In this document: positions 25,201-34,200 of the stretch, piece by piece
Layout of the letters: each line of letters starts with the position of its first letter
Position numbering within the stretch: the stretch's first letter is position 1
The notes under the pieces: generated by a model
The model's input: only the letters and a program-made list of their open reading frames with translations
Database searches by the model: none
What the model was told of the DNA's origin: nothing
Source: Tubulanus polymorphus
Lineage: Eukaryota; Animalia; Nemertea
DNA length: 64,000 bases
Direction: 5' to 3'
Assembly: GCF_964204645.1 (NCBI RefSeq)
Contig: NC_134031.1
Span: forward strand, 15,673,807 to 15,737,806
Translations under genes and position numbers: made by a program

Positions 25201-28200
25201 ATGACGACAGCTTCTTTGTATGCCTCGTTAATGAAACTATTGTTTTCATGAAATATCATTGAAATATATGTATATGTATATTTTTCAGAACGCTCATCTC
25301 GAAAAAATGTACAACGAACTCCTCAGAGAGTACGAAGATAAACAAAGATCATGGGAGTTGGAGAAAGGCGAGATGGAAGGCGAAGTTGCCACCCTGCGTA
25401 CCGAACTCGAATCCGTTCTCGTCGAGATGCAGAACTTGTTCGATGCCAAGCTGTCGCTTGAACTCGAGATCGCCGCTTACAGGAAACTATTGGAGGGAGA
25501 GGAGACCAGGTAAGTCGAAAAACAGTGACAAACAACGCAATCCCTGGTGAGCCATCGCCAATTCGATAACACTGTCCTTGACCTCCATTTCATCGTTGTC
25601 ATAAACGTCATTAGGATATATGCATTATCTGCGCATTGACGCCATTTGCAAAATGAATAATCATCGTTTGGAATTGCAGTTATAATGACAATAAATACTT
25701 TTGGATTCTGGTGAACACCGTGTTACATCATTTCACATCACCGCCTATTGATAATTAGTAAATACGTTGAAAATGCAAACTCGGTTTTCCTTCCGAACAA
25801 GTTAACAAGTAAACCTAATCTAATAAATCATCTAGCTATCGTCGACGTGAACAAGAAAGAGAAACTAGGAGGTAATTTTAATCCGTAATCCTTTATTTCC
25901 TCGTTTATGAAACTGGTCGTATTTGTAGGTTTGTTTTTATCAGTGATGTGAACAAAAAGTCGTCGTGGGCTTTCTCAAAAATCTCGCAAACTCCCCCCTT
26001 CTTCGGAATACAATTTCAAGAATTTATCGAGCATCACTGTGGATATTGTGATTTCTTTTTTTCTATTGGTTAGTCGTTATATCACGTTAATAACGACGAT
26101 GACCTCTCTAGATGAATGTTATTCTTCCCCACCCCATCTATTACGCATATGTATGTATAAAAATATATTTACAAGAGTGGATAGGAATCGTGTCGATTCT
26201 TTCCATGAATTTGAATACTACGCATTTTCAATGTAATTACGTTTATCGTACCGTAAACTTGCACCAGTAAACAAAAACCCCTCCATCTTGCACTCTAAAC
26301 TTGTGGTGTAATGATAATTGCCGACAAAACGAAGAATTTGTCCCAAAAAAAAAATCTGTTATGTTTTTATGCATGAGTCTTCTAGTGAATTTGACTTGAG
26401 TAGATTGTGTATCGCAGTAAGATCGTCTGGCAAAGCGAGGAGGCATTTCACAACCGACTAAACTATGCAATTCAAATCAAATTTTATTCAGACGAGCCAG
26501 GCGTTTCTGACCGCGTTATCTTATCGTTCGTTAGATTTCATTAGATTCATAGCATGCAGCCGATAACTCTTTAGATCCTAAAAGAAAAGGGGTGTAATCT
26601 ATCCATTATCCTTAACTACTATCGAATATCCCTTTTCTTTTTTTAAAAACAGCGTGTTGTTTAAATTCGAATATGATTTTGTCGTCTATTAATGCACGGG
26701 ATCAGTGTGGTAATGGTGTTATTCAGAGAAGCGACAAAAATGCAAGAATTTCAGATTTTCCCCCTGGGGATAAGTACCGTAAACATCGAAATGTGTTACA
26801 GTCGTTTCTTGCATTTTTGGGGTCGTATTCTAGGCGCCTTTGCGCGGTTACACAGTCGTTGTTGCGTGGTTCAAAAAGGGGAATTTTAGATAGATTGCAG
26901 GGCCCGGTTTGATACACTGGTATCAACTTAAACCCAGGGACTAACTCATTTCATTTTCAATTGAGTTATACCCAGGGTTAAAATTAAAAGCAGTCAATTA
27001 AACTAGGCCCAGGTTAATGAAAATAGAATATTAACGAGGCCCTTCCGACTCTAACTATAGAAACCGTCATCAGGGAGGGTTCTATTTTCCGACCCGACGA
27101 TGACCACAACCGTTCAACAACGATTCGGTAACCGAGCCTAGGCACGTTTGTATAACGTGTTTGAACCTCACTAAACACGTTCAAGAGGAAGGTTTAAAAA
27201 TGATCGATATGCACTTGAAGGCAACGGTGAGTAACTTGCTGTGTGACGTACTTTCAGGATCGGGCTGAAGAGCGTCGTCGAAACGATGATTGAGCAGAGA
27301 GAGGGCGGCGCCGATGGTAAAAAATAAAGTCGTTCATATATATATAAGACGCAGATTATTCTCTCTAACTGATGTCGCAGCTGTCAGCGATAAAAACCGC
27401 CGTTATTTATATATTCATAATCATTATAACATTTAGGGCAAAAAATTCGCGCTTCCCATCGTTTTTAGAACATGTAACATATATACGTACTGTCGGGGCT
27501 AAACTAGTTCTTCTAAATATTGTTCGGACTAATCCCATTTGAATATTATGTCCTGATTGATTATTTGATTAGTTGAAAGTGGTTTACTGACAGTATATAT
27601 TTACATCTCTCGGTGGTAGAGCGTGATATCATCCACATTGTTTAAATGTCAACATGGGTGCATCAGTTTCCAGTAAGAAAATCGACTTTTTTTTTCATTG
27701 TTCAAACTTCCTATCTCGACTATCAACAATCGGCGATGATCTTTCCAGCTTGCAGTATCTGTTGAAATCTGTTCTTTATCTCAATGGACGATGATGCATC
27801 CGTTTCGACATATCCTACACCGTGTATGGGAATGATTTCGACTGTAAGCGACCTCTAGCGACGGTACGGCTACGCGCACTTTCACTAATAACGAATATTG
27901 CACCGATTGAAAATCGAACGCTAGAGGTCGCTGTACAGAAGATATACGCCAAAGTCTTTATATATATATATAATCATCCGGTTTAACAGGTGATATGACC
28001 ACCAACACACGAACACATATCTCGCTTGATGCGCAGACATCGCATTATCAATATGATCATAATTAATTCGCATGTATGCATATTCGATTAACCGCTACAG
28101 GTCTGGCATGAATGATATAATCAAGCAGTCAACGACATCCGGCCAGCAGTCTGCCATGATGATGACATCCGGCCAGTCTGCCATGATGATGTCGGGAGGT

Positions 28201-31200: not shown

Positions 31201-34200
31201 ATATTAATCCGATAGTTTGATAGACCTTTAAGTTACGAATTAACACAAAACGATATTCTCTAAACGTTTTGCTAAATGTAACCGTAGGTTTCAAATTGAC
31301 GGTTCCATTTACGGAATCACCTCGTCCACTATAACCAAAAACCCGGCCTGTTTCCGTGGTAGGCTGTAATGAAAGTATACAAATTATTTTAATCGATTTT
31401 TTGCATGACTTGAAATACTTTCATTTCGGCTGTGTGCATGTTGCTGCATGTTCTATTTTCATTTTAGTTATTTCACGTTTCTTGAATGGTGTTTGCAATG
31501 TTTCACTGTTGTTTCTGTGTTGTTGTTCAACGGCAATTATTAACCGTGTTTTTTTGAATTCGTATAACTATCCAATTATTCCGTTTGAAAAAAAATCATT
31601 CGCTGGTTAAGAATTGTTCGTTTCTGCATGTACGAACACAACAGACGTCACCGGGTTCAATCGAAGTCGAAACATTTTTCGCAAGTATATTTATGAGTCA
31701 CGACGCGTTAATAGATTCTAATCTGTAATTACAAAATATCTCCAAAAATATGCAAATGGGTCTATAATCTTCACGGGTCAGATTCGTTAAAAAAAACTTT
31801 CGCGAAATGTGTTTCGACGTTTGGTGTCGAGTTTGTATATTATCTGCTGAAGCTTTCGAAGCGGCTTATTCACATTCTTCGGAGTACGGGCATGACGTAA
31901 ATATGTACTCACTTACCTCGAGTGGAATCTGACACAGATGGATAACTATATTACACGGACAGAACTCTGCCGGTGCCACGGAAATCATTTAGTGTATACA
32001 CCTTTTACAGGACCTTAGCGGTGGCAGGAAGCACCACATACATAACACGAGATTTATTCAGCCTTTTTCATCGGAATCATCGATTACAAAATTTGAAGCG
32101 TATATTTTGAAATCTAACTTAGCCTAAAACAAACTCCGTCACTTACTAAGAAATACTAAAACTAGTTTCTGTTCATTAGATGCTCATAAGTATTCACGTA
32201 ATAAGAACTCAAAAATATGTAAAAACTTTGCACTAGATAAAGAATCACAATCTTCAAATGTGCACTGAACACGATATTTAAACTCGCTCTTATTTTCTTC
32301 ATCTTTATTTCCAATTGAAACTTCAATAAACATTTTTGTGTTTGAATTTTAGCGAAACCCAAACATCATGATTCGCCCACTACGCATCGGGCACGTGGTA
32401 ATAGTAGTCCCCATGGTAACTATTTACGAATTTCCGACACCAATTTCAAATTTCGATATAGATTTTCGAAAGAAAAAATTAATCAAAAATGCTTATGAAA
32501 TTATGTGGTTTTCGTGGACGCTTATATAAAATCATTATCGATCATTATCATTGGACGAGTTTAGCTTCGAAAATGAAATCATAAAAATGGCTTGGCAAGA
32601 ATGGTAAATTCTTCAGTGCTTTCCTCTCCGGAAAGCAGGCGGTGATTTGCATCTGATGAGTTAAAATCATCCTAAAATTGAATAACTCTCTTGAAAATAT
32701 GATTCATCTTTCGGCTGGGGTATAAGGCGGAAAATAACACTTTCGGGTGAATCTGATTCCTCTATCCCTTTCAATCTATTAGCTTGAAATCATTTTTCAA
32801 CGAATCACCATTTTATCTTTTGTTGTCCGTACGAATCATTTTTTCATACATTTATCAGAATCTGAATAATATATATTTTGGAAAAAATTGATAATGAAAA
32901 TCGAGGCTGATTCAAGTAAAAGGAATTGAATACCGTACATTTACATATTAAGTTATCTCTCATCCATACTCTCCAGTGCTTATGGTTCCCCGTACCAAAC
33001 TCCAATATCGTATTATTATGATAATATATCACAAATATAAAATCCTACCTACACGATACCTTTTCAAATTACGATATTTCAAACACAATAATCATTCATT
33101 TTAAATTTTCCTAGTTCCAAATGCGTATTTCATTTTCCATTTCCTGCATGGTGTGATGGTGTCCGAATTTACATTAGAATATATATAAAATATCTATATG
33201 TGAAAAATTAGTCACTGAAGAATCATAATGAAGACTGAAAAGTTGCCATTGAATTGAAGTTTAATCCTGAAAAAAAAATACGTTTCACTTTAAAATCTAT
33301 TGAAAAATTCCACTTGAATTCAGATTATTTTATGTTGTAACCACCTTCGTTTAAGTTTAGTTTCCCCAGCTCAAGCAATGTTGTTTATTTTTTGTTGTTT
33401 ATTTATTTTGCAGCCGGCAACAAGCGAGGTTAGTTGCTGTAAAGTTTCGTCCGCTTTCTTTGTGTCGGATTCCGACATTTTACAAATATGCAATTAATCT
33501 TAGTACAAAACAAATCACAAATGAATTTCTTTTAGTCTATCGATAACATGAATAGTTAGTAATATCATAATAGTCGAGGAAGGCGGTTTGATAACCGTCT
33601 GCCTGGTTGACCAAACATCGACAGTAACGTCCCAGAATTCGCCCTGTTTAGATAGTTTTGAACTTCTGGCTTTCATTGTTCCGGAATATTGTTTTTAACG
33701 AGCACGTCTAGAACTGTTTTTTAAATCTAGCGACTAACAATTTCAAACAATTCCCGGACTCCAAAGTTGCAATTACCCTGTGTCAAATAGTTAAAATGAT
33801 ACACGTAGTTTTCGCACTCTTACACACATACAAATACACATAAGAAGAAATTTACACTTAGGTATTTACATTTTACGACACCGAAGTAAAGGGTTTCACA
33901 ACAACAATTAGATACTCGCATAGTTCTAAACGTATTGTCCGCAGTTGTAAATATGTATATGATATATAAATATGTATTTGTCTTCGTCTTATTTCTTAAG
34001 CTCCGTGTGAGAATCAATTTAATTATATGTATAATCATAATAAGAATTAAGTAACAATAAACATCTATTGAATAACCGCCCATAAGTATCGATATTAAAC
34101 GGAATATTTTCATCGGGAGAATAATGCCCGAGGAAATGAAAAAAAAAACGGGTCTCGAATATTCGTTTCTGACAATTTATGATATTTCTATTCAGCTTCT

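Follow-up and report, generated by a model that had tools for sequence, protein, structure and literature searches.

The 64,000-nt stretch of DNA that was analyzed here (the window) comes from the palaeonemertean Tubulanus polymorphus (contig NC_134031.1, positions 15,673,807 to 15,737,806) and contains the main cytoplasmic intermediate-filament (cIF) gene of this species. Our subject is a group of alternative exons that lie in this gene between the exons for the rod and those for the lamin tail domain (LTD). All coordinates are window positions on the plus strand unless stated otherwise. RefSeq names the gene "60 kDa neurofilament protein-like" and lists five isoforms, X1 to X5 (XP_074653990-994). 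The rod domain (Pfam Filament, PF00038) was recognized in the last rod exon at 25289-25509 (E = 7e-12), in a candidate first exon described below (E = 1.9e-19), and in precomputed annotations of the isoforms. When the last rod exon was used in a profile search, the best match was an intermediate-filament (IF) protein of Lineus sanguineus with 67% identity, and the search returned no close representative. Behind the rod, the LTD (PF00932) is precomputed on isoforms X1 to X5, and its first exon at 34196 matches weakly when taken singly. The isoforms end in ...QKTIYT, with no cysteine four residues from the end and hence no CaaX box, and a lamin nuclear localization signal was absent from them when judged by eye. 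With a rod, an LTD, and neither of these two nuclear features, the gene fits the class of protostome cIF proteins that carry an LTD.

Isoforms X1, X3, X4, and X5 could be reconstructed exactly, over their whole length, from canonical GT-AG exons in the window. Isoform X2 was reconstructed from the rod exon on, and in the part that extends from this exon to the end of the first LTD exon, all five isoforms agree exactly with the deposited proteins. The first exon of isoforms X1 and X3 to X5 is located at 11251-11813 (E1c), and isoform X2 maps to 8961-9503 (E1b); both exons have a phase-2 donor. Exons 2 to 5 (19983-20169, 22271-22366, 24718-24879, and 25013-25138; 571 nt together) lead to the last rod exon, which encodes the end of coil 2 and is shared by all five isoforms. 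Farther downstream are a 63-nt cassette exon at 32353-32415 (E8; isoforms X1 to X3) and a 15-nt micro-exon at 33414-33428 (E9, encoding GNKR; present in isoforms X1 to X4 and skipped by X5), each of which runs from phase 1 to phase 1. A donor at 32397 for E8 was ruled out, since the RefSeq models splice from 32415. The LTD begins with the exon at 34196-34323 and continues in 35091-35210, 35325-35447, and 35549-35587, the last of which contains the stop codon.

The rod exon ends in a phase-2 donor at 25509, and the acceptors at 33414 and 34196 are both phase 1. A preliminary description of the window, made from the nucleotide letters without database searches, had argued that an adaptor exon is needed to join the rod to the LTD in frame, and the phase arithmetic proved correct. 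The three candidate adaptors 7a, 7b, and 7c, with 59, 203, and 80 nt, respectively, all have lengths of 3n+2, such that joining the rod directly to the LTD, or placing two adaptors in series, shifts the frame. Read by eye, the junctions from the rod to 34196, from 7a to 7b, and from 7a to a candidate terminal exon, 7d, all reach a stop within a few codons.

The boundaries proposed for exons 7a (27258-27316) and 7b (28101-28303) agree base for base with RefSeq. Exon 7a, which encodes the segment IGLKSVVE..., is used by isoforms X3 to X5. Exon 7b, which encodes SGMNDIIK followed by a Gly/Ser/Met-rich linker, is used by isoforms X1 and X2, where 25509 is joined to 28101 and 28303 to 32353. After the rod, isoform X5 consists of 7a and the LTD; X4 of 7a, the 33414 exon, and the LTD; X3 of 7a, the 32353 exon, the 33414 exon, and the LTD; and both X1 and X2 of 7b, the 32353 exon, the 33414 exon, and the LTD. 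Every isoform contains exactly one of 7a and 7b, and none of the five contains both or neither, as the claim of mutual exclusivity had predicted. The proposed route from the adaptors to the LTD needed amendment: 7a and 7b do link to the LTD in frame, but mostly by way of E8, which the preliminary description had missed, together with E9. Three of the five models (X1 to X3) reach the LTD through E8. As adjacent homologous exons with identical flanking phases, of which each of the five isoforms uses one, 7a and 7b fit the pattern of a homologous mutually exclusive exon cluster.

The homology of these exons is evident at their starts. Exons 7a, 7b, and 7d each begin with a post-rod motif that lies right behind a phase-2 cag|G acceptor and completes an arginine codon. 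A loose pattern for this motif found only three matches between the rod and the LTD, namely, those of 7a, 7b (SGMNDIIK), and 7d (IGFKNVVD). The paralogy noted previously between the starts of 7a and 7d (IGLKSVVE versus IGFKNVVD) thus holds and, by the motif scan, extends to 7b. A direct repeat of the 7d start, its frame-0 translation, and an alignment weakly point to a probable fourth, decayed copy of the post-rod exon start (IPFKNIDD) at 28536-28660, about 550 nt upstream of 7d. A fainter echo of the GLK type (EGLKMIDM) occurs at approximately 27185, just 5' of 7a.

The same segment is conserved outside this species. In cIF proteins of Lineus, annelids, flatworms, and others, with a tail domain or without, the rod is followed by R-xGL(K/R)xVVE, and in a metatranscriptome protein (P0161) that is 63% identical overall, the 7a segment is nearly unchanged. 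In the ortholog of Lineus longissimus, there are two homologous post-rod exons of 68 and 101 nt, both of length 3n+2. These are used either/or (isoform X1 of that gene takes the 101-nt exon and isoform X2 the 68-nt exon) with the same flanking phases and a phase-1 LTD acceptor. Two proteins from the annelid Owenia fusiformis (P0212 and P0214) are identical save for two segments, one of which is the post-rod piece. The other covers residues 344-384, lies in the rod, and is of equal length in both proteins, which suggests, as far as protein sequence can tell, another either/or exon pair. Finally, a paralogous cIF gene of T. polymorphus itself, located on the same chromosome contig as the window (C7:11192282-11194238), has a single 230-nt linker exon, again 3n+2 between the same phases, that is Gly-rich and ends in ...MQMSMSMSGG, much like 7b and 7d. 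The motif scan found no alternative linker copies in this paralog. Because the single-copy paralog and the Lineus exons share it, the 3n+2 length is taken to be ancestral, and tandem duplication of an ancestral 3n+2 exon makes frame incompatibility between the copies automatic.

The Lineus locus has a further open frame in this region. At 21439-23502 of the locus (L010), between the two alternative post-rod exons and behind a phase-2 ...aaacag|G acceptor, we observed an unannotated, acidic, Ser/Glu-rich frame of 688 codons with no Pfam match.

Transcript evidence came from sequencing runs X4 and X6 (always called runs here, as distinct from the isoforms), which derive from one 2014 sample and were used as assembled contigs. 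Contigs drop rare variants, and their depth is a rough measure. The two runs are not labelled as RNA but behave as cDNA; we treated them as such because they contain a GT..AG joint from 25509 to 27258 and leave the intron without coverage except for a dispersed repeat. The depth at this joint was 129 in run X4 and 27 in run X6. The contig that bears the joint has 570 letters upstream, compared with 571 nt for exons 2 to 5, so that exon 2 through 7a form one unbranched contig. One copy of the post-rod exon per mature mRNA is also what these contigs contain, although contigs cannot exclude rare forms.

Three fates were observed at the 7a donor (27316), with depths in run X4 of 37.9, 33.8, and 55.1; their total of 126.8 compares with a depth of 129 in the contig that joins the rod to 7a. 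First, as the preliminary description had anticipated, the donor is read through to a nearby stop, giving a form without an LTD: a contig at 27287-30210 is continuous over the donor (depth 37.9), and the retained stretch (27317-27327) adds G-K-K before a TAA at 27325-27327. Second, the donor is joined to 30182 through a GT..AG joint (depth 33.8). This acceptor, which had been overlooked, is strong; the contigs break and merge at 30181-30210, and the alternative terminal exon that it opens (30182-30848) adds a single Asp before a stop at 30184-30186 and carries an AATAAA at 30815. Coverage in run X4 ends at 30848, shortly 3' of that signal. Third, 27316 is joined to 32353: in a 1,326-nt contig (depth 55.1), the next 30 letters have their one match at 32353. 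Judging from the depths of the read-through and the 30182 splice relative to that of the 32353 splice, about half of the transcripts in the 2014 sample encode a protein without a tail domain.

Some features of the sequencing data concern the cluster less directly. Run X7 gave no match to this region. Run X3 was ruled out as RNA and treated as DNA, with a depth that tracks GC content and runs past the poly(A) site. Inside 7b, run X3 has an in-frame 3-nt deletion at 28156, within an ATG-ATG-ATG repeat that encodes Met, for which slippage or a tolerated coding polymorphism is possible. The dispersed repeat in the rod-7a intron lies at 26900-26970, where many contigs of 90 to 95% likeness end loosely and the depth in run X3 is 224.

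Two further candidate exons had been proposed. For 7c (28743-28822), only the 3n+2 length stood. Its acceptor is AAG, whereas all verified acceptors of the gene are cag or tag. It has no post-rod motif in the motif scan, is part of none of the RefSeq models X1 to X5, and has no junction in the contigs of runs X4 and X6, where it lies within the unspliced contig. We regard 7c as a product of chance. The candidate terminal exon 7d (29091-29637) begins with IGFKNVVD behind its phase-2 cag|G acceptor and would encode a Gly/Ser/Met-rich tail without an LTD. Its open frame of 181 codons ends at a stop at 29635-29637, uses the full sets of four Gly and six Ser codons, and was free of stops in only 3 of 5,000 dinucleotide shuffles. 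The only single-nucleotide polymorphism (SNP) seen in 7d, at 29190, is synonymous, and the used poly(A) signal at 30815 lies downstream.

We propose an explanation that, taken as a whole, we consider likely: the gene carries tandem-duplicated post-rod exons of length 3n+2, one copy of which either links the rod to the LTD or ends the protein early. In the ancestral layout, one post-rod exon, which encodes R-xGL(K/R)xVVE and has a length of 3n+2, stands between the phase-2 rod donor and the phase-1 LTD acceptor. Tandem duplication of this exon would have given rise to 7a, 7b, probably 7d, and the decayed copy near 28536. By the arithmetic above, an in-frame tail domain requires exactly one copy, and none or two lead to an early stop. 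Mis-spliced transcripts would be cleared by nonsense-mediated decay (NMD), if other clusters with lengths of 3n±1 are a guide, and such removal of skipped and double-inclusion forms may be what enforces exclusivity. Behind the chosen copy, the two exons at 32353-32415 and 33414-33428, both of length 3n, are optional. In the 2014 sample, the 7a donor also acts as a decision point, at which it is either retained (stop after three codons) or joined to 30182 (stop after one codon), and both tail-less products end at the poly(A) signal at 30815. Exon 7d would add a third class of product, with a long Gly/Ser/Met-rich tail and no LTD. By changing linkers or dropping the tail domain, the gene might tune filament properties in different cells.

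Several observations weigh against this explanation. Exon 7a is present in all assembled transcripts of the 2014 sample. Among the splices from 25509 that the preliminary description had envisaged, the one to 27258 was seen in the contigs of runs X4 and X6, but no branch to 28101, 28743, or 29091 was detectable there. Instead, 7b, 7c, and 7d all fall within the unspliced contig at 27287-30210. For the junctions of 7b, the evidence is that of the RefSeq models. The shorter side of the joint from 27316 to 30182 has only 29 letters, the length that a junction unitig flanked by branch points on both sides would have at k = 31. Lastly, 7d is included in no RefSeq model, has no paralog in the T. polymorphus genome, and has no relatives among metagenome contigs. 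The preliminary description had named serial inclusion, or the absence of joins from 25509 to 7b or 7d, as the outcomes opposed to its proposal; serial inclusion was not seen in the five isoforms or in the contigs of runs X4 and X6, and 7b is joined to 25509 in RefSeq, whereas the 7d junction was not seen.

The observations on 7d give substance to an alternative that we find plausible, if not the one we favor, namely, that 7d is not a coding exon but a decaying duplicate, left only in the tail-less isoform as intron that is retained or as 3' untranslated region (UTR). Besides the missing junction from the rod to 29091 and the missing relatives, the depth of run X6 over 7d is 6.7 to 7.9, near that of the upstream non-coding stretch (about 6). 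However, the 181 open codons, varied Gly and Ser codons, so few open shuffles, and a sole SNP that is synonymous speak against a decaying duplicate, as do a perfect phase-2 cag|G acceptor in front of a conserved motif and a used poly(A) signal downstream. The claim that 7d is a terminal exon therefore stands on its motif, acceptor, and long open frame, but not on a junction to 25509, a gene model, or a relative. On balance, we lean slightly toward 7d being a real, rarely sampled terminal exon.

A second alternative concerns the cause of exclusivity rather than its existence. Here, the either/or choice is real but is governed by RNA structure, by regulators of splicing, or by competition between splice sites, and the copies have simply inherited their 3n+2 length from the one ancestral exon. 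Since the linker exon of the single-copy paralog is already 3n+2 and sits between equal phases, the lengths need no selective explanation, and 5 of 19 non-3n clusters in Caenorhabditis elegans show no dependence on NMD (PMC4165533). No shared docking/selector pairing stood out, however, among inverted repeats in 25500-29120, and any mis-spliced product, read by eye, still meets an early stop. The inverted repeats were short and at chance level and were not accepted as evidence for docking/selector pairing in exon choice. They are stretches of 14 to 19 nt, 82 to 93% complementary, between 25620-25697, in the intron immediately 3' of the rod donor, and 27278-27291, 27412-27430, or 28029-28045, which lie within or close to 7a or 5' of 7b. 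We view this alternative as possible but rather doubtful.

It is improbable that 7a is effectively constitutive, with 7b, 7d, and the 28536 copy being duplication relics within 3' UTR or retained intron sequence, and with low-level splicing noise having been annotated as the 7b isoforms: the single unbranched contig from exon 2 to 7a in both runs, the unspliced contig with its even depth of about 6 to 8 in run X6, and the lack of relatives of 7b and 7d in searches are what it would predict, but both splice sites of 7b are used, exactly and in frame, by two RefSeq isoforms, the functional linker exon in the paralog is similar to 7b, Lineus and Owenia retain two alternative versions of the post-rod segment, and the 7d frame is much longer than chance permits.

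Under the explanation that we prefer, with tandem copies of a 3n+2 exon, the tail chemistry of one cytoskeletal gene is set by small exons that can be exchanged. The protein may receive a linker that is short and acidic or one that is rich in Gly, Ser, and Met; it may lack the tail domain; and possibly it may end in a long low-complexity tail. The occurrence of this design in two distant nemerteans and probably in one annelid indicates that it is old or recurrent in spiralians. The 7a and 7b isoforms are already in RefSeq, and neither homologous exons with incompatible frames nor filament proteins with alternative tails are new, so that no new mechanism is involved. The public annotation does not contain the tail-less forms, the acceptor at 30182, exon 7d, or a first exon described below.

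Invertebrate IF genes with alternative tails were first recognized around 1990, and a literature search found no paper on nemertean cIF isoforms. The neurofilament gene of the squid Doryteuthis pealeii, in work attributed to Szaro et al. 1991 and Way et al. 1992, reportedly yields NF60, NF70, and NF220, since its transcripts are processed in alternative ways 3' of the rod. Like that gene, after whose NF60 product RefSeq names the Tubulanus gene, the present one combines a single lamin-like rod with several alternative tails. The squid products are said to be neuronal and to have no LTD, whereas here the main products keep the LTD and the alternative parts are short linkers. Of the LTD-less forms in Tubulanus, those from 7a read-through and from the splice of 27316 to 30182 were seen, and the long 7d tail is predicted. 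In the snail Helix aspersa, a non-neuronal IF gene is said to give rise to isoforms A and B, with a C-terminal difference produced by alternative RNA processing (reportedly described by Dodemont et al. in 1990). This gene, too, encodes a protostome cIF protein, has an exon structure like that of lamins, and is processed alternatively at the C-terminal end, but its variants reportedly differ behind the tail domain and not in a duplicated post-rod exon.

As a speculative extension, which we consider possible rather than probable, the nemertean cIF locus could be a multi-tail gene of the squid type that makes LTD isoforms, abundant tail-less filaments, and a cell-type-specific isoform ending in 7d. 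The 688-codon frame of Lineus, an unannotated acidic exon at the same place, would be analogous and might encode an alternative tail of giant size, similar to squid NF220. If this were true, one ancestral spiralian gene would make both LTD-bearing and LTD-less filaments by duplicating and re-using its post-rod exon, and the locus would offer a living model for the origin of tail-domain-less, vertebrate-style filaments.

Closer relatives differ in how much of this design they have. Lineus longissimus shares the phase-2 rod donor, the phase-1 LTD acceptor, and two either/or post-rod exons, but each of its copies is joined straight to the LTD without cassettes such as E8 and E9, and Tubulanus has more copies as well as tail-less outputs. 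The likeness to Owenia is at the level of protein, with two proteins that differ in the post-rod segment. In a survey of C. elegans, homologous mutually exclusive exons of non-3n length were found, and 14 of the 19 clusters were policed by NMD (PMC4165533). Those clusters resemble the present one in having tandem homologous exons of one length class, as 3n+2 is here, with one copy per mRNA keeping the frame and two or none leading to an early stop. In Tubulanus, the copies instead differ greatly in length (59, 203, and perhaps 547 nt), the donor of one copy also switches to a tail-less product, and a role of NMD is proposed by analogy. Lophotrochozoan lamins have alternative or extra exons near the 3' end; when one terminal exon is used, the alternative ending becomes part of the 3' UTR (PMC10125929). 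These proteins are nuclear, however, and the part that varies is the CaaX end and not the stretch from rod to tail domain.

Two observations concern the edges of the gene. A candidate first exon at 6700-7247 (E1a) encodes a head and coil 1A, is intact, and has a phase-2 GTAAG donor like E1b and E1c, yet is absent from RefSeq isoforms X1 to X5; in the speculative multi-tail model, the predicted isoform ending in 7d might pair with it. Just 3' of the gene, at 38188-39243 on the plus strand, there is a 352-codon open frame that, by eye, resembles a seven-transmembrane receptor.

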